A stretch of 64,000 nucleotides of DNA. Origin: Klebsormidium nitens. Its lineage: Eukaryota > Plantae > Klebsormidiophyceae. The notes under the pieces were generated by a model. That model saw only the letters and a program-made list of their open reading frames with translations, was not told the DNA's origin and searched no databases. Every line of letters begins with the position of its first letter. Positions within the stretch are counted from its first letter, which is position 1. The stretch is from contig DF237235.1 in the NCBI GenBank assembly GCA_000708835.1, positions 1 through 64,000 on the forward strand. Direction: 5' to 3'. The translations under genes and the position numbers were made by a program. Below, one piece after another: positions 19,663-55,927 of the stretch.

Positions 19663-20387
19663 GGGGCCTCACCTGCAACGTCCTACAGCGCAAGCCAACG
19701 CTCTTCCCTGTTCAGAATCAAAGCTGTTGGCAGTGTACAGCCTCAGGACAGCATTTCCACGAGCTCCCTCCCGAAATTGTTGCAATTTCATTTTTGAGAA
19801 GTTTAGGGTTTTAAGTCACAGTTCTCATTCAACACGTTGTGAAACCCTCCCTGGACATTGTCATGTCGTGATCAGGACTTTGACACACGTGCGCTGGTGC
19901 CGACCGGGACAATCATCCGAAATCAGCGCCGGACTTTTAACCTTTGTTTCAAGGGGCAATGTTACTGCACGGTTTCCCGAGTCTCGACGTCCCAGGATCC
20001 GGAGAGAAAGTGGTGTCAGGAAAGCTGGGCCGTGTCAAAATTTCATTTCGACAATGACACGCTTCCTCAAGCGCTCCTTTCTTGCTGTCAATGTCATGTG
20101 CTCGAGGGTCGAGTGTCAGGGCGTACGTACCTAGGCTTAGCCGCTAGCTGAGGCTAGAACTTTGAAGAGCTCAGAGTCAGAGGGAAAGCGCATGGAGAAT
20201 GCAGGCCCCAGGGCTGATTGCAGGAATGCAGCCCTGACTCTGAGGAGGCCAAGGAGGATACCTTAGCCTAAGCGACGCGCATTGTGATGCAGTTCTGAGC
20301 CAGCAACGCCTTGGGCTTGTAAGTAAAGCTTCCCGGAGAGCCTACTGGCAGGCTGCATGATGCATCCAGCTAAGTGCATTTGAGAAG

Positions 20388-23300
20388 ATGGAGGGTGCGA
20401 GGGCGGCCAGTGGCACCCAAGCGGAAGCGGACGGCCGCCGCATTTCAGAGAGCGACTACTTTGCTGAGAAGCCTGGGGCAGCTTTCGGAGAAGAGAACGA
20501 GCTGCACACTGTGACAGATCTCCATTCACGGGGAGCGACAGCGTTCGGGAGACAGGTCACAAGCACGAACGACGTTCGCACCGCGATCAAGCAGGAGCTT
20601 GAGCAGAACAGCAGCGGGGCGAGCCCCAGGACTGCAAAGAAGTTTGCGTTTGCATATTTGCTCTGCCTGCTTGTAATCATTCTGCTCAGCCTGGCGTGCC
20701 AATTGGTGGTCGCGAGTTACATCGGCCGCTCCGAGAAGGACTCGTATATTGTGAACATCTCGGGGAAGCAGCGGTACCGATCGCAGAAGATCACCAAGGC
20801 CTCAGTTGTGATTCTGCTCAATCGGAGGGATGGGGAGAACGCCAACAACTACACCTTGGCTTTGAGTGCCGATCTAGCGGACTTAACCGCAGCTTACCAT
20901 GGGTTGCTGAACGGCAGCAAACCCCTGGACCTGCCAGGATCTGGCGATGGAGCAGTCCGCAGTTTGTATCAGCAGATTGATCCGTACTTCCAGGCTATCT
21001 CCAGCAACGCTCAGGCTATCCTGGCGCTGCCTCTAATAGCATCCCCCACTGACACTGCGCCGGGGTCACTTACGGCCAGTGTAAACGGCATCTTAGCTGC
21101 AGAATCGCAGTTCCTTCTGCTTCAGGATGAGATCACATCCAGGTTTACCAAGATATCAAGAGATCACCTGCAGTTTCTGTTGATCCTCACCTGGGTGCTC
21201 CACTCATCCGTCATATTGACGCTGATCCTTGAGGGGGCCCTGGTTTTCTATCCACTCATCAGGTGAGGTTGACATTACAGCGTAGCTACTTTGCACCCAG
21301 AAAGCGGTGGGCCAACCGTGTTATCATTGCAGAAAGTCATTGCAGGTTGGGGACACTTGCACTCTCACTGTTTGATCTGCACATGTGCTCATTCTGCATT
21401 TGCCTCACAGCCGCTGTGAAGTCTTGTTGGATGCAGATAGAATTCAACATGGAGAGAAGCAGACTGATCAGTTGCAGTGGACCTGCAAGATTTGGCCTTT
21501 CTTTTCGATTTTCGGAAGATCTTCGATCCTTTGGATGTGTCTCCTAATGAGCGTTATTGTGGCTGTGCAGACGAACTCAAATCCTGATCAATGAGAGGTT
21601 CAACTTCCTGCGGGCGAACTATGTGTAAGTCGATCTATTTCCTGTTAATAACCTTGTTTCAGTTTCCGTTATTTCACAAGCATCTCCTGAAGCGAGTAAA
21701 GCAGTTACAATCTCTTGTAGCGTGTTGTTTATTCTAGCGCGTTTCGCTCACAGATGCAATAAACCTTGCACTTGGATTTTGTTAACTCGTCATTCTCAGG
21801 CTCATGCAAGACGGCCGCAGAGTTTCTTGATTAGCAGGCCCCCTCAAAGATGTTCTAATAAGAAAAATGAGCTGCGTCCTCTTTCCGAAAACCCGCATTC
21901 AGACAATCAGGCTGACTTTTAAAAAGGCAGAGCACGCCCAGGGCTGCCTGCTTTGTGCCTTGTTCTGGCGCTTTGTCATGACTTTGAGCCATCCCATAAT
22001 TGTGGTAGCCTTGCATTGCAAGGCGAATCTTTGTGCATTGCCCTGCCTTCTTGACACTCAAACTTGGTCAGCCCTCTGATAACTTAAGCTTTTCGGGTAA
22101 GAGGACAAGCTTGGACACGTTTTCTGGCCACGTTGGGTCCTCTTTGCCTGGTTCTGGCCCGGTCTTGGGAAGGATTATAAGCCGGGGCATCGTCCCTTGT
22201 GCTCCAAAGTTTTCTGTGCGTTGGACTTTGTAGAGACTCTCTTGTAGTTGAAGCACGAACTTTTTCTTGAAACTCAAGTTTTCTTCGACTTCGTCGACCA
22301 GTTACCCTTTCTAAACTTAGTTTTCAATCCTTCATCCTGCAGGAGTGAGGCCCAGGGTCGGAGTATGGCGTCGTTTACGATTGGTTACGTCACTAACCAG
22401 ATCCGGAAACCCCTGGACGGGATCATTCACTATCTCGACAAGGCCCTGGCACAAGTCCCTCCCTCCAAGGCTGACAAAGCTGCAAACGGAGGCCCTGTCA
22501 AAGACATTGTGGCGCAGCAACGAGGCTTGGAAACGGTGGGGAGCGGGGACATTGGGGAGCACCTCAAGGGGTGCCGGCAGAACTGCGAGCTGCTGCAGAC
22601 GATCGTCGAGGTACGCAAAGGGTTCAGTTTTTAGACGGATTTAGTTGACCCGAATTTTTCTTGTTATCGAGGGGGCAAGCTTCAAAGGCACCATGTAGAC
22701 AAGCATGATTGAAGGCTTTGGATTTAGGGAACCGCAGAAACCTTTCCTTGTGCACTTTCAGGGAACAAGATGCAGTGCAACATTTTGGAGCTTGGTTCAT
22801 GGATGATCGGAAGCCCATTCTAAAGGAAAGGCAAGCAATGTTTGACAATTGTTTCTCGGAGACCAGCCTCATGAGCCGCACCCTTGCAATTGAGTTCGCC
22901 TAGCTCCCCTTAGGCAAACCTCGACAGCTCCTCCATTCTGCCTCGCGTTTCCAGACCGTGAAACAGAAGGATTGTCCCTCTCAAGACCTTCCTGACTTCC
23001 GGAAGCATCTTCGAACTCATCCCACTCGCCTGTATTATCAATAGAACACTGGAGAAGCTGACGAGACAAAACGATAGGGGAATCAGAAAAGGTTCTCGTG
23101 CCGGGAGATGGCTATTGTAGTTGACAACGGCCGCATCATGATCCACTTTCTCATGGGTGCCCACGGCACTCTACACGTTGCAGGTTTGACAAGCCATCAG
23201 CGCCACCCTTCCCAAAGACCTTACTTTTACGAAGTTGAAAGCAACATGAAGCGCCTCTAACTTACTTCTTGGATTCCCTTCAGGACGTGTCCGACATCCG

Positions 23301-25166
23301 ATTGCTGGAGAACGGGCGCATGAACCTGGCGCTCGAGCGGACCAACGTGGCCGAGCGGGTGGCCAACGTGCTGGGGACGCTCGCACCGCAACTAGACGCG
23401 CGGAAGGTCACCGTGCGGCAGGAGGTCGACCCGGCGCTGAAGACGCTTTTGTTTCTGACAGACGGACACCGGATCGAGCAGGTGAGGAGGAGATCAGTGA
23501 TGACGTATGTGCTGGTGCTTTTACGCTTTTTAGTGTCGGGTCTACTTGGTGCTGCGGCTATTGGTGTGCCTGGCGATTAACACCCGATTGAGCAGGGGAT
23601 TCTTGATGTTCCTGACGATTGACACCCAATTGAGCAGGGGATTGATACTGGTGGAGCAGGTGAGGGGGTTAGGTTTCAGGGGTTTGTGATGATGTTAACG
23701 TGTTGATGCAACTAAGCGGTCAGATTCAAACGGTCATTTATGCGGGCACAGCTTTGTCCGAAGAGCGGATCGAGCAGGAACCAGGGGAGGGGTCACCCGA
23801 TGTCGTTAAGCGTCGAAGGTGAAGGCCGCTTTATGGTTTGGTGCTTAGGCCGAGTGTTCAGCACTGTTGGTTTTGGGAAGGATCCCTTTGGTCTGGAGAA
23901 ACATGCAGTGATTGTGAGTAAAACTGAGCAAGGAAGGATTCTTGTCGTGTTGCAGAAGGCCAACGTCTTTCTCCTGCACGACTGTTCTTACTTGATCGCT
24001 CACGGAAGACCACACAGTCTTGTATTGGCGCTTCACACTCCTTGTGACAGCGAATGCGCCAAGTCGCTTCGGACCATTCGTTACCCCGCCAATGCTGCTA
24101 GCTTTGGTTGAGAAAGAGCTGGTGTTTCCTCCTTCGAGATCTCCGCAATGCTGCGAATAGCCCAGTATTTCTCTTTCCCGTTTCTTCCTCTTTCCCGCTT
24201 TTTCTCACCCTAGTGAACCACCCCTCTCAACCCAGACGCTCCTCAACCCAGTCGCTAAAGCACTTCCAATCACCCCCATTCCCTCTCCGTCAAGTAACTA
24301 AGCCACGCCCGTCTGCCCGCAGATCCTCCTCAATCTAGTTGCCAAGGCCATCCACCTGGCCCGCGGCGGCACGGTTATCGTCCGCGCCTGCACGCTTCCC
24401 AACGGGCTGCGCTTCGAAGTTGAGGACAACGGGAGCGACATGCTGGAGGGGACACGTCATCGCATGTTCGAGATGTTTGACGCCGAGTCGCGCCACCTGG
24501 CAGCGGGCAACGAGCTCGGGCTGTACATCTCCAAGCTTCTCGTCGAGTTGATGGTGGGCTTTGGAAACCATTGATCGAGGATCTTGAGCCTCGACGGGTT
24601 TTAGTTTTTGATAGTGTTCAAGATACTGTCTCCAGAAGCACTACCCAGCGCCGACGTCGAGCATGGGCTCTAAACCTACAAACATCTTGTCGGTCGCTGT
24701 TGTAACCATCACTTTGCGATGTTGGGAATTGCAGCCTCCGTTTTAAGCTATCACTTTTCAGGCGACTTTGAGGTTTTTGAGTTGGGTCTCGCGGCTGATT
24801 TCGGGAAAAGCGATGCTCTGGTTTATTCTTTCCGTACGTCAGACTCTTGACCTTTGCCTTTTCCGGCCTCTCCAGGGGGGCACGATTGGCCTGAGCAGCA
24901 CCCCCCAAGAAGGCAACGTGCTGTGGTTCGAGCTGCCGCTACAGCCGCTTGATGCGAATGAGGCGATAAATTACCCGCTGCTGGAGGAGAATAGCATCAT
25001 GCGGAGCTCCCGGCTATCGTCTGGCAGCCGCAGCAAGAGCGGCAGCCGGAATCGGGTACACATTGATATCGCCACTCTAGTTAGGGAGGTGGACGGGTCC
25101 ATGCGTTGGGAAGGGTACAGTCCGAGGCAAGCGGCCTCTGATAGAAAGGGAGAAGACATTTTGTAG
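20388..25166 (+). CDS. Membrane histidine-kinase-like receptor: TM - NarX/PilJ-type sensor - TM - degenerate HisKA - degenerate HATPase_c; no receiver domain seen
   Basis: Exons 20388-21262, 21571-21624, 22343-22610, 23284-23481, 24323-24553, 24876-25166 (phase-consistent). Two hydrophobic helices flank VNISGKQRYRSQKI. H-box-like TNQIRKPLDGII; then DVSDIRLLENGRMNL, DGHRIEQILLNLVAKAI, FEVEDNG, MFEMF, LGLYISKLLVELMGGTIGLSS...LWFELPL. Confidence 0.85.
23465..23666 (+). repeat. Tandem copies of the HK exon-4 3' end plus donor
   Basis: The real ACACCGGATCGAGCAG|GTGAGG recurs as ACACCCGATTGAGCAGGGGA, ACACCCAATTGAGCAGGGGA and GGAGCAGGTGAGGG. Confidence 0.8.
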
Positions 25167-43878: not shown

Positions 43879-46800
43879 TCAAGCTGAACCCTTCAGCAAC
43901 TTCTCTGCCTCTTGATTGATGACGTCCCAAGCAGCAAGGACGTGCTCCCGTTCGGTACGCGAGTTTCCAACACAGAAACGGAGCGTGTAGACCCCGTCCA
44001 AAACCTGAGCAGCCAACGAAATGGACATCAAAAAAGCGATCAGAATTATGATATCCTCTCTTTCGAAAGAGGGCACCAGGTTCTCACGCCGGCACTTCTC
44101 TGGAAGTTCGCCGTTGAATCAATCCACTTCCGACAGTGCCTTATAACGATGACAACATGTGCAGTGTTCCGATCGGAAATCCATGGAAACATCACTTCAC
44201 GGTCATTTTCAAGAAAGACTTTTTTAGATCTCACTTACGTTTGAGACCTTCCTCCCCAATAACTTTGCATACTAGGTTCCTTTTGGCTTTTCATCATAGC
44301 CTCCTGTCTACACCACCATGTCGCTACAGGTAGACGTCATCAAGTTCAACGCACTAAGCAATACGCTTAGTGAACCACAAGAAGTCAAAGCTAGACGGGT
44401 GGATTGTAGTTTAGGGCGGGTGTGGTTGCGGAGCCCATGTCCTTGGATTGGATTCCCGGTCAGGTCGAGGCCTTACTGTTCACTTCTGCTTATTGTTCAC
44501 TGAATCAAGAAGTTGCGGGATCCCTCACCGTGTGCGTGAAGAAGAGCTTGCCCGTCTTGTTGACGTTCTCGAGGAGCGTCGCGTTCAGCGTGCGGCCGTT
44601 GTCCGGGTCGCCTGCGGGCGGCTTCGCCCGGAAGCAGAGCAGAGCAAACGTCCGGGGGACCAGAACCTGAAGAAAAGAGCGAGAATTTGCCCAGGAAGCT
44701 TGAACCGGGCACCTTTTCCTCTCTGTCTAAGACAAAAGGTTTTACAGGCTGCTCGACAGTGTTGTCAGCCGCAAGCGTCAAAGGTGCATCCGAGAGACGG
44801 GAGTCACGCTAGTGGACCAAAAAGGAAGCGGGCTACCCACATATTTTCTCCTTTCGACGATGAGACTTTGTCCGATTGAGTCGCACCATATCAAATCGTA
44901 AGTCGAACATCAAGAAGCGCTTGCGCAAGTAGTCAGGGGGCTGACGAGTTCAAGACGTGTCACGGGCGTTACAAGTCTCCAGCCAATCGCTCCTGTCTTC
45001 GAAAGACTTGACCACGATACCTCTTCAAAAAGTGTCGCACAAACAATACCTCGCAAAGGTGTCGCACAGACGCAAGCATCCAAAAATTCTGGAGCCAAAC
45101 AACCGGCTCAATTTTTTCACTGGGGAGAGCCTTCTCTGCCCCCTATCGTCCGCATGATATCGCCAAGACTCACCTCGTAGCGCTCGTCGGCCCGTACTAG
45201 TTCCTCGAACTCGGCCGCCAGCTGGATGTGCTTCCGGAGGTATGCCCGGATACCGTTCGCTCCGTACAGGCGCATGACCAGCCACAGCTTGAGGGAGCGG
45301 AAGCGGCGCCCCAGCGGCAGCTGCCAGTCCTTGAAATCCACCACCAGGCTCGCTTCGGACGCCTGCGGACGGCAGGAAACAAATCTATGGACAGAGTGAG
45401 TCGAACCTCCGGACAGTATAACGCAAGATTCCGGTTCCCTCGCTGATACTCTGTTGAACGGTTCCCTTGAAGATCTCGATAGCGTTGGTTGCGGGGGAAG
45501 GTGGTTTGGGAAGGTGGTTTGACAATCGGTTGACAGAGTCCACCACCAGGCTCGCCTCGAACGCCTGCGGAAGGCAGATTGCTTTTTGTGGACAGTGTAA
45601 GACGGAGTTTCGAACACTGTGAAGAGTATTTTTGGACGCGGTGACGAGTCGCTGGTGGTCTCTTGAAATATTCGTTGACGACTAAAGAATCTCAGTCGCA
45701 AGGTGAGAGGTTTAAGCTGGCTGAACGGCTACAAGCTACCACCAGACTCGCCTAGGACGCCTGCGGACAAATTGGGACAACGATTCGGATGGTGTATGAC
45801 GAACAATGTATCGAGAATCCGGAGTCTTGCTGATTAGTTGTTGAACAGGACAGTGTGTAACGAAGAGCGAAACGAGAATACGGATTCTTTCTTATCAGTT
45901 GTTGAACGGGACAGTGTGTAACGAACCGAGAAACGAGAGCCCGAATTCTTGCTGAGAACTTGTTGAACGGTCCCTTAAAGACTCAACAACTTTGGTTGCT
46001 TGAGAGGGGGGTTTGAGCATCGGTTGGACAGATTTTCCGACCAGGGTCGCCTCGACGTGCTGCGGACAGAGGGAGACGGAATTTCGGACGCTTGCAGGCT
46101 GACGCTCTGTTAGATTACCCTTAACTAATCCAAAAGACCCTCAGTCGCAAGATAAGGTGGTCGAAGGGCCTGTTGGGCGCTATCCTACCACCGAGCGCGC
46201 GTCGGCCGCCTGCCGTCCGTGTGAAACAGAATTTCGGACGCTGTGACTTTTCGTCGATTTTCCGTTGACTGGTTTCTGACATTCAGACGCTGATTTCAAC
46301 TTGAGTAGCAATCACTTCCAGTAAGAAAGGAAACAGTCTTTCAAAAAGATTGGCTGGGAATTGTCGTCCACTTACCGCGTTGCGCAGGTACTCTGGTTGC
46401 AGGGACAACGCATCTAGCAGCGGCTTCGAATCCTGCACAAGCGAGGGGAAATTTCAAACGTCACTATTCGGAGGCAAATTGCAGTCCAACGCTGTCGGGT
46501 CTTAGCGTGGCACGGATGTCAAAACGGGAGGAAGGAGAACATGGACCCCCGACAAGCTTTTCCCGTAAGCCATAACCCCCTAGGCCATAACCGCTTGGGA
46601 TCGACGGTCCAGATTGTCTGATGCGAAGTCGATCGTCGATCCGGCGAGGCCGGATTGGCCGCCAGTCCATGTTTTCCTTCCTTCCGTTCTGTCCGACGTA
46701 AGCGACAGATCTGGTCCCAAGATGTTACAGGATTCTCTGGAAGGCTGCCGAACGCGGCAAATAGACCAATTGACATTCGTCGCTTTGCCGGCCTCTTAAG

Positions 46801-53464: not shown

Positions 53465-55927
53465 TTAATGAAAGCGCTTCTTAAATTCATCGTATAAAAC
53501 AAGGACCCATGCGGCACCTGTACTTCGCATAACACCTGACAACGCCCCTTTGTAAAAGCCACGAACCCCCTCGACGCGAAATATAGTCCGCCAACAGTCC
53601 AGCGTGCTTTTGTACATTGCATCTAGGTCTCCCGACTGCATCATCATCCTATGCCTAACTGTGTTGAACGGGTAGGCTACCAGACCTGAAGTGGTGCTCA
53701 CCGCTTGTGCTATACCCCACTTCTTGTACAACGCCCCCGGTTCGTTGTCATCGATGTACAGATCCTTGAAAGAATCATACATGCCGAAGTACAAGGCCCG
53801 GTGTACGATGATCCCCTGGATCGAAGCCCCAAAGCCTTTGTATAAGCCCCGCAACCCGTCTGACCTATAAATCGTGCTAATCACATTTTTGACCCCCGAA
53901 AATTGGCGGCCCGCAGTGCCGTACCCAACATCCGCTGCAAGCCTGGTGTGAGCAAAGTCGAGCGGGTACGTGATGGAGAGCGCAGTCGCCCCCGCACCAG
54001 CCCCCGCCAAGAGGTTCGCCCCGAAGAATTTGTAGAAGTCGTTCTGCTTGTCATACTTCCCGAGAAGGTCCCGGTACAGGTCCCTGAAGGCGAAGTTGAG
54101 CTGCGAGGTCGGCACGTGCCGCATCATGTCGGCCCCGTTGCCCCGCCAGAGAGACAGAAACCCCTGCTCCCGGATGACCCGCCGCACGCAGTCAATGATG
54201 CCCGTGTACCGCTTGCCGGAGAGAAGCACCTGCCTGTTGCCGTCTTGCGTTTGGAGCAGGACTTTTACTCTGCAGAGAACGTCAGCTCGGTTGAGGCATA
54301 ACGACACTGTTGCCGTCTTGTGTTTGGTGCTATCAGCATGAATTGAGAATTGCCAAGAGCCTTGCTTCGCTTCAAGTGAACAACTGATTCTCTTATCCAC
54401 AATTTCTTCTGATCGGTCTCTCTTACAACTGAAACAACTGGAACAGTGGCCGTTCTGTGACGACAAGGTCAAGAAGGGCTGAAATACTCTGCGGTACTAA
54501 AGCTGCGAAAGCTTGAAAACCTATATGAGTCGCCTAGTTAGTGTACTAAAAAGATCCTTCTTCTCAATTAGGTCCGAAGGCGCATCCTTGCCGCAGAAAG
54601 TTCCGGAGACACGTTCAAATATCTGCCCATCGAGCAAAAATATTGCTCTGCAGACAGCGGAAAGTGCCAACAGTTTGTGGCAAGCGTCACTGCATATGTT
54701 GCCAACTTCCGATAGAGATTGTGGCAACCAATATGGATCTCTTCCAGACTCCTCGGTTAGGTCTCATATTCGGCTCAAAAGCTCATAACGACTACTGACG
54801 GCGAGGACGCCAAAAGCGCCGGATGTTAATCGTGATCAAACAACGGCTGATGCTTGTAGTGGCAAAACGGATGTGACAGAACAGTCAATCTGCGGCGAAC
54901 TACAACGGCCCTTCTACCTCGTTTCTTTTTCCAGCTCAAAGCAACTGGTGTCTCTCGATATGAGGGGCTATGACCGGGGGATTTTCACACCAACGGCTCA
55001 AGGAGTCCAATCACAACACCGCAGAAGCTCCAGGACTCAGAGAACAGAACTGCTTCCCAAACCGTGGGAGCTACAACCGAAAGTAGCAGCAAAGTAGAGC
55101 AAAGGACGAAGCGCATAATGAGAGAAGGTGGTCTTCAAAGGTTGCAAGAAGTAAAGGGGTCTTGCTTGCCAGCTTGAGGTACTGACGGTAGTCCTTGATT
55201 TGCAACTATGACGCAGGTCGAAGCTAGCAATAAGAAGGAAGGACTGCTCTCAACATCTACAAGCAACCAAAATACTATTCATGACAATTGCTGAATCGCA
55301 GCCGACTCATGCAAATGGGCAAGCGCTCCGTCAATGCTGGCGTACTCGCAGTGACTACCAGTAAAAGCAGTCCATCTAGACAAATGCTGTCCAGGGGCTC
55401 AGCAGCCAGAGACCTGCTTCTTTAAGGACACGGCGCCATCACCACACCGATGCCTGCTACATTGTATGCTACCTTCCTGAATGCGCATGTCTTCCTTGCT
55501 GCACAGTGTATTGACAAAAGCTTGCTGGTGCTTGCTTGTTACAAGGATCGTCATCGAAATACATTCTGAACCCCTTGGGAAATTCTTTGCCGCCACTATG
55601 TCCGAAGCAGCTCAATTGAGCATGCCCAACGCCCGGCACTTGGAAAAGGAGGGTGTCCAAAATTTTCTCTTCGTACGGTCTGAATTAGAATTGATCTGGC
55701 AAAAGCTGCGCTTACCTTTCAATTGGAGCGACCGCAGTCTGCGTGATCCCCCCTGCCACTGCAGCCGCCAGCATGTCCAACGTGAAATGGGTCGCCGCCG
55801 CTTCTTGGATGGCCCACTTCTGCGCATTCCACCGTCCCGCGTCATCTTCCGGCGCTAGCGCCTCGCTGGAGTCCAATTGTCCTTCTCTTTGCCCACTTTC
55901 TGAAGGTGGGGACACATCGGGCGGCAT
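53465..55927 (-). CDS. ADP/ATP carrier-like mitochondrial-carrier-family protein, PM-ANT1 (At5g56450)-like subgroup
   Basis: Exons 55927-55716 and 54269-53465 (phase 2). Three MCF repeats: APIERVK, YPLDFAHTRLAADVG, YPFNTVRHRMMMQSG. LWRGNG, WGIAQAV and MYKSTLDCW...RSTGAA..LVLYDE match my recollection of the PM-ANT1 subgroup. Confidence 0.88.

Follow-up and report, generated by a model that had tools for sequence, protein, structure and literature searches.

A PilJ-type sensor on a degenerate histidine-kinase-like protein in the streptophyte alga Klebsormidium nitens

A spliced and expressed gene for a two-transmembrane protein

We analyzed a 64,000-nucleotide stretch of the Klebsormidium nitens genome (scaffold DF237235.1, assembly GCA_000708835.1, positions 1–64,000; hereafter the window), in which the gene at 20388–25166 encodes a 638-amino-acid (aa) protein with a PilJ-type sensor set between two transmembrane (TM) segments, ahead of a histidine-kinase-like body. 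The scaffold and the window share the same numbering. A cluster look-up identified the product as GAQ86381.1 (UniProt A0A1Y1IB80), which matches the RNA-based six-exon model exactly. Its database names, 'ATPase domain of HSP90 chaperone' and 'histidine kinase', are generic only, and the former, which is the GenBank product name, is misleading for a two-TM, PilJ-sensor, histidine-kinase-like protein. An earlier description of this locus made from its letters alone (the sequence-only reading) had placed at 20640–21262 a eukaryotic receptor with a bacterial NarX/PilJ-type extracellular domain, and had proposed that it senses nitrate or another anion.

All five GT..AG introns of the gene are joined, with zero mismatches, in RNA contigs from four separate studies, where the RNA evidence consists of assembled contigs. 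Exon 1 lies in a 292-codon open frame at 20388–21266, its last base being 21262 and the splice donor following at 21263, and position 20640 falls on codon 85, immediately ahead of TM1. At the other end of the gene, the stop codon (25164–25166) follows a disordered tail. The G+C content is even across the locus and equal to that of the flanks, and the neighbours on the K. nitens assembly are eukaryotic genes.

Two further observations concern the transcript. Parts of the introns (21270–21536, 23452–23873 and 24525–24904) carry RNA contigs of depth 2–10, compared with 60–240 for the exons, and these look like unspliced or retained-intron molecules. In addition, the 5′ untranslated region (UTR) contains six upstream ATGs at 20192–20360, and one 8-codon upstream open reading frame ends five bases before the start codon.

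The ectodomain as a PilJ-type four-helix bundle

A Kyte-Doolittle profile of the protein contains only two hydrophobic segments, at about aa 85–115 and 261–292, with ∼150 aa between them. Lys85 precedes TM1 and Arg292-Arg293 follow TM2, which under the positive-inside rule is consistent with an N-in topology. The peptides quoted in the sequence-only reading are present in the translation of 20388–21262, and its order of TM1, helical ectodomain and TM2 stands. On exon 1, the Pfam model PF13675 (PilJ) matches aa 114–222 at 42.2 bits (E 9.6e-11), above its curated gathering cut-off of 26.6 bits and across 105 of 114 model positions, and a scan of the full protein places the match at aa 114–221 (E 3.2e-10). 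This match is far beyond chance. An NCBIfam scan of exon 1 gave no match, an Atlas search returned PilJ again and nothing further, and a second PilJ-like sequence was not found within the 64-kb window.

We modeled aa 80–291 with AlphaFold2 (AF2) on the basis of 91 relatives, which gave a predicted local distance difference test (pLDDT) score of 94.3 and a predicted template modeling score of 0.86. The model consists of four long helices (2–68, 74–96, 109–134 and 146–208 in model numbering), the first and last of which continue into the TM helices. In Foldseek the top structural match was the nitrate receptor McpN (6GCV), followed by NarQ, with weak E-values (none better than 7e-3), a common outcome for helical bundles. 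VIA-align gave a Z of 17.8 to PilJ (7ZJR; root-mean-square deviation 2.0 over 133 residues), 15.2 to McpN (124 of 124 residues) and 13.6 to NarQ with its TM helices included. Because generic four-helix chemoreceptor domains score near PilJ, McpN and NarQ, the fold by itself is not specific. The profile of the 91 relatives is specific, and against the PDB it matches PilJ at 1e-12, McpN at 8e-10, NarQ at 2e-4 and NarX at 5e-3. The ectodomain is thus modeled as an outward-facing, antiparallel PilJ-family four-helix bundle between two TM helices, and almost certainly represents a PilJ-type sensor of bacterial ancestry. Both the NarX/PilJ-type identity claimed in the sequence-only reading and the four-helix bundle that it called for were therefore recovered. 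Apart from a glycosylation sequon in the ligand motif, discussed below, the ectodomain carries further sequons at N154 and N175.

The ligand motif

About 12 residues past TM1, at aa 122–133, the protein carries VNISGKQRYRSQ, which reads V-N-I-S-G-K-Q-R-Y-R-S-Q. The N-box pattern to which it corresponds, [IVL]-[ND]-x-A-G-x-Q-R-M-L-[ST]-Q, was defined from McpN, in which one nitrate sits on the dimer axis, hydrogen-bonded by Arg61 and in contact with Gly58, Ala59 and Met62, and in which the R61A substitution abolishes nitrate binding (PMC6381276). The P-box of NarX/NarQ-type kinases has the same G-x-x-R, with conservation of 100% for Arg, 100% for Gly and 91% for Met (PMC8199190). Of this motif, N123, G126, Q128, R129, S132 and Q133 are retained in the K. 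nitens protein. The G-x-x-R pair, G126 and R129, is invariant in the 32-row full-length alignment; across the 91 rows of the sensor alignment no exception occurs at R129, and G126 is almost invariant.

One of the presumed bacterial relatives, a HisKA_3 kinase from metagenomes (P0038), has an N-box, VNIAGKQRYKSQ, with the unusual Lys / Tyr / basic-residue combination of the Klebsormidium proteins. This variant may mark a distinct ligand subclass.

The kinase body and the N-terminal motif

The full-protein Pfam scan found only two domains, PilJ and HATPase_c (PF02518, aa 459–565, E 6.4e-18; E 1e-10 on exon 5 alone), and no HisKA, HisKA_3, HAMP or receiver (PF00072). In the full-length AF2 model (pLDDT 71, both termini disordered), a single uninterrupted helix, aa 224–347, runs from sensor helix 4 through TM2 and the linker into the first helix of the dimerization and histidine phosphotransfer (DHp) domain; the second DHp helix and then an alpha/beta ATPase lobe come after it.

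Each of the kinase motifs differs from that of the relatives. The H-box, S-H-E-L in relatives, is T-N-Q-I in K. nitens, with Asn328 in place of the phospho-acceptor His; the Asn of the ATP lid (the kinase N box) is Lys473; G1 has changed from D-x-G-x-G to D-N-G-S-D (Gly to Asp504); and G2 has changed from G-x-G-L-G to G-N-E-L-G. The same changes are present in a contig from a related Klebsormidium-like genome (L001), and the phospho-acceptor His has also been lost in two other relatives. Closterium, Spirogloea and Mesotaenium retain both the His and the ATP-site Asn. Judged by these residues, the K. nitens protein is not a working histidine kinase and is presumably catalytically dead, with the HATPase_c fold kept. 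The sequence-only reading had contrasted its sensor with the CHASE, ethylene-binding or GAF sensors of canonical land-plant histidine kinases, but the protein lacks both a phospho-acceptor His and a receiver.

Ahead of TM1, the cytosolic N-terminus contains a streptophyte-specific motif, RGAxxFGRxxxxxxDVRxxVK (aa 48–68, 20529–20591), whose conservation extends over the Klebsormidium relatives, Mesotaenium and Closterium and weakens in Spirogloea. In the alignment of relatives it was not found in the presumed bacterial sequences.

Relatives, shared introns and selective constraint

With the segment from TM1 through TM2 as the query, exhaustive HMMER searching returned 1433 relatives at E<=0.001, 402 of them at E<=1e-10. 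In most of the top matches the sensor stands at the extreme N-terminus of kinases, cyclases, phosphatases or PAS/GAF arrays, and most come from metagenomes or named bacteria. The closest full-length matches come from Mesotaenium endlicherianum (two genes), Spirogloea muscicola and several Closterium species, along with some further transcripts; they share both the layout and the N-terminal extension, and all lack a receiver. We placed 105 sensors in a maximum-likelihood tree, built by a quick method, without land-plant sequences and with bacterial labels mostly inferred, in which the 14 eukaryotic rows form one clade (Shimodaira–Hasegawa-like approximate likelihood-ratio test 99) inside the presumed bacterial rows, in accordance with the bacterial relationship that the sequence-only reading had suggested; the Klebsormidium trio sits on a long branch of 1.13. 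Moss or Selaginella NarX-like kinases and K. nitens paralogues were absent among the best 150 sensor and best 120 full-length matches, no dedicated search having been made for them.

Three of the five K. nitens introns match those of the Closterium CAI5525273.1 gene in aligned position and phase (Table 1), and the remaining two in each are lineage-specific. Given the three common introns, the intron-bearing gene predates the split between Klebsormidiophyceae and Zygnematophyceae, and it is old and vertically inherited. The acquisition of the PilJ-sensor gene is ancient. With five spliced introns, three of them common to Closterium, the gene is indeed intron-containing and fully integrated, as had been proposed.

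The L001 contig has the same six exons, with an exon 1 protein 89% identical to that of K. nitens, and a more distant Klebsormidium-type relative is 67% identical. In the comparison with L001, the ratio of nonsynonymous to synonymous substitution rates (dN/dS) was 0.09 for the ectodomain, 0.08 for the segment from TM1 through TM2 and 0.16 for exons 3–6, at a dS of 0.4–0.6. The protein is functional and under purifying selection, and the sensor is its most constrained part.

Features of the locus and the window

Table 1. Features of the GAQ86381.1 gene, introns shared with Closterium, and two other exons in the window
Feature	Position in window	Strand	Evidence and remarks
5′ UTR (start approximate)	20104..20387	+	RNA contigs reach 58–96 nt upstream of 20200; six upstream ATGs
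Cytosolic N-terminus, aa 1–85	20388..20642	+	Streptophyte motif at aa 48–68; AF2 disorder, then helix aa 60–75
TM1, about aa 86–110	20643..20717	+	Hydropathy; one continuous helix into sensor helix 1
Extracytoplasmic PilJ-type four-helix-bundle sensor (modeled), about aa 111–261	20718..21170	+	PF13675, AF2, VIA-align, dN/dS
N-box-like ligand motif VNISGKQRYRSQ, aa 122–133	20751..20786	+	G126, R129 retained; Y130, R131 in place of Met, Leu
TM2 (about aa 262–290) and exon 1 end	21171..21262	+	Hydropathy; splice donor 21263
Exon 2, juxtamembrane helical linker RRTQILINERFNFLRANYV, no HAMP	21571..21624	+	RNA contigs; Pfam; AF2 continuous helix
Intron shared with Closterium, phase 2 in codon 310	21625..22342		Closterium L004, 3512–3747
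Exon 3, first DHp helix; H-box TNQIRKPL	22343..22610	+	Translation, alignment; Asn328 (22395–22397) for relatives' His
Exon 4, second DHp helix and catalytic domain start	23284..23481	+	RNA contigs, AF2
Intron shared with Closterium, phase 0 after aa 465	23482..24322		Closterium L004, 6312–6887
Exon 5, HATPase_c core; degenerate N box (Asn to Lys473), G1 (Gly to Asp504) and G2	24323..24553	+	PF02518, motif table
Intron shared with Closterium, phase 0 after aa 542	24554..24875		Closterium L004, 7128–7349
Exon 6, HATPase_c end, disordered Ser-rich tail, stop codon; no receiver	24876..25166	+	RNA contigs, Pfam, AF2
Exon matching pyridoxal-dependent decarboxylase	45117..45701	-	PF00282, E 8e-16
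Long exon of ADP/ATP-carrier-like mitochondrial carrier	53465..54472	-	53–58% identity to plant At5g56450-type and animal carriers; 98% identical copy in raw assembly

A proposed mechanism and its alternatives

The reading that we favor, with moderate confidence, is that GAQ86381.1 is a ligand-gated dimeric PilJ sensor, with nitrate as the leading candidate ligand, on a pseudokinase with conformational output; that the protein is a ligand-responsive receptor of some kind is likewise probable. It would act as a dimer, in which a small oxyanion, nitrate being the leading candidate, would bind between the paired helix 1 segments, on the axis of the dimer, at Gly126 and Arg129, in the manner of McpN, NarX and NarQ. 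Binding would shift helix 4, and this movement would be transmitted along the unbroken helix through TM2 into the first DHp helix, with no HAMP between, so altering the shape or the partners of the pseudokinase dimer. Since the His, the ATP-site Asn and the G1 glycine have been lost and there is no receiver, the output is probably conformational, and we infer that the signal does not pass by phosphorelay. The protein would serve as a pseudokinase scaffold or engage other proteins by way of the DHp domain, the dead ATPase lobe or the conserved N-terminal motif.

Several points weigh against this reading. The strict N-box pattern is not matched by VNISGKQRYRSQ, in which Ala is replaced by Ser, Met by Tyr130 and Leu by Arg131. 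Among the 155 motifs found in 159 stored sequences, Ser at the Ala position is common (43), but Met stands at the position of Tyr130 in 146 and Tyr in 5, Leu stands at the position of Arg131 in 144 and Arg in 2, and the residue replaced by Tyr130 is the very Met that contacts nitrate in McpN. The sequence-only reading was right that the nitrate-binding Arg is retained, as R129 with its Gly partner G126, but this carries less weight as ligand evidence than it had assumed: the PilJ of Pseudomonas aeruginosa also has G-x-x-R, as G-E-L-R, and its domain does not bind nitrate (PMC6381276), so that G-x-x-R alone is not predictive. By analogy, Arg129 would be necessary for nitrate binding and not sufficient. 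The invariant Asn123, ∼13 residues beyond TM1, moreover lies in an N-x-S glycosylation sequon (N-I-S, 20754–20762, aa 123–125). Beyond the pocket, the bacterial label of most relatives comes from their layout and source and not from names, and the output step in our scheme is purely inferential. Because Tyr130 and Arg131 replace near-invariant residues, a nitrate ligand is plausible but unproven; for the K. nitens protein we regard nitrate or nitrite as a tentative assignment and lean slightly against it, with better prospects for those Zygnematophyceae relatives in which the N-box is exact.

The same substitutions could instead mean that a true PilJ bundle has been retuned, its Tyr130/Arg131 pocket binding another anion, a small molecule or a partner protein in place of nitrate, alongside the loss of the kinase. 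Consistent with this, none of the three Klebsormidium-type orthologues departs from these two residues, rare as they are among the motifs overall, a long branch leads to Klebsormidium in the sensor tree, the kinase motifs have degenerated on the same lineage, and PilJ domains without the full N-box did not bind nitrate (PMC6381276). Yet neither the Arg that forms the hydrogen bond nor the Gly has changed, nor have the Asn, Gln, Ser and Gln around them. NarX binds nitrate although its own motif differs elsewhere from the N-box of McpN (PMC8199190, PMC6381276), and an anion could be accommodated by a Tyr hydroxyl and an additional Arg. We consider retuning a real but rather unlikely alternative. 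Far less probable is an ectodomain that senses nothing and acts as a structural dimerization module for a pseudokinase with a purely cytoplasmic role. The loss of all catalytic motifs and the missing receiver would suit such a module, but the ectodomain is the most strongly constrained part of the gene (dN/dS 0.09), and the ligand-site residues are identical across orthologues with saturated synonymous sites.

The bacterial look of the nearest non-algal relatives, and the single long open reading frame without introns that makes up exon 1, might raise suspicion of bacterial contamination, of recent transfer or of a pseudogene in decay. These explanations, to which we assign a negligible probability, are ruled out by the spliced introns in the RNA of four studies, the flank-like G+C, the eukaryotic neighbours, the intact orthologues in related algae with three shared introns, and a dN/dS of about 0.1.

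The known plant nitrate sensors, NRT1.1 and NLP7, are of other kinds, and streptophyte algae are the closest relatives of land plants. The vertically inherited PilJ/N-box family of Klebsormidium and Zygnematophyceae could be a concrete candidate for external nitrate sensing in the algal ancestors of land plants. A bolder extension of the ligand-gated pseudokinase reading, which we regard as a long shot, is that the inherited, intron-bearing family of receiver-less N-box PilJ membrane kinases in streptophyte algae is a direct extracellular nitrate receptor, predating and unlike NRT1.1/NLP7. Its Klebsormidium copy would have become a pseudokinase that is gated by ligand at a retuned Tyr/Arg anion pocket and signals through the N-terminal motif.

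Comparison with known systems

McpN (PA2788 of P. aeruginosa, 6GCV) belongs to the same Pfam family and, like the K. nitens protein, has a four-helix bundle between two TM helices. The N-box lies at the same place in both, with Asn, Gly, Gln, Arg, Ser and Gln in common, and where McpN has Ala-Gly-x-Gln-Arg-Met-Leu, K. nitens has Ser-Gly-Lys-Gln-Arg-Tyr-Arg. In contrast, the output of McpN is that of a bacterial methyl-accepting chemoreceptor, whereas the K. nitens protein has a seemingly dead kinase body and is encoded by a eukaryotic gene with introns. Escherichia coli NarX and NarQ (3EZH, 5IJI) share with it the order of TM1, four-helix sensor, TM2 and kinase, as well as the G-x-x-R on helix 1, although the K. 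nitens motif is nearer to the McpN N-box than to their P-box. Because it has no HAMP, no HisKA_3-type dimerization domain and no phospho-acceptor His, the K. nitens protein falls outside the NarX/NarQ family, and it also differs in having no known NarL/NarP-type partner. Unlike eukaryotic hybrid histidine kinases, it has no C-terminal receiver (REC).

NarX-like sensing regions in K. nitens are not new. Kabbara et al. (Genome Biol Evol, 2018; PMC6324907) reported them in KniteHK29 and KniteHK44, as well as in two Selaginella kinases (SmoelHK12/15), one moss kinase (PpateHK38) and one amoeba kinase (PpolyHK39), and proposed horizontal transfer and nitrate sensing during terrestrialization. Those kinases and GAQ86381.1 come from the same species in the case of K. 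nitens, and all join an N-terminal region resembling bacterial nitrate sensors to a eukaryotic protein of the histidine-kinase family. GAQ86381.1 is thus no new class, contrary to the sequence-only reading, which had called the receptor possibly undescribed. With this idea in print, and with the PilJ domain of the public GAQ86381.1 detectable by routine scans, the surprise is limited. Since the 67 K. nitens kinases of that set had passed a filter for two of HisKA, HATPase_c and REC (PMC6324907), and GAQ86381.1 shows one of these in Pfam, it may not be among them. In our literature search we found no later paper that takes up the NarX-like sensors of K. nitens.

What is new here is the receiver-less Klebsormidium/Zygnematophyceae family, with its shared introns and its N-terminal motif, together with the finding that in Klebsormidium the ligand pocket and the kinase chemistry have diverged as a pair. 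The receiver-less PilJ kinases of Zygnematophyceae (Mesotaenium ME001323S00375, Spirogloea SM000013S26429 and Closterium CAI5525273.1) have the same layout, N-terminal motif and sensor clade as GAQ86381.1, at only 33–40% identity between the Klebsormidium and Zygnematophyceae sensors. Spirogloea retains the kinase motifs, but a Cys stands in its N-box where the strict pattern requires Ser or Thr. An exact N-box, VNVAGRQRMLSQ, is found in Closterium and in Mesotaenium ME001323S00375; unlike K. nitens, both also retain the His, the ATP-site Asn and the G1 glycines, and for this reason look like working kinases. These canonical copies and the Klebsormidium copy, with its changed pocket and probably dead kinase, provide a natural contrast for comparison.

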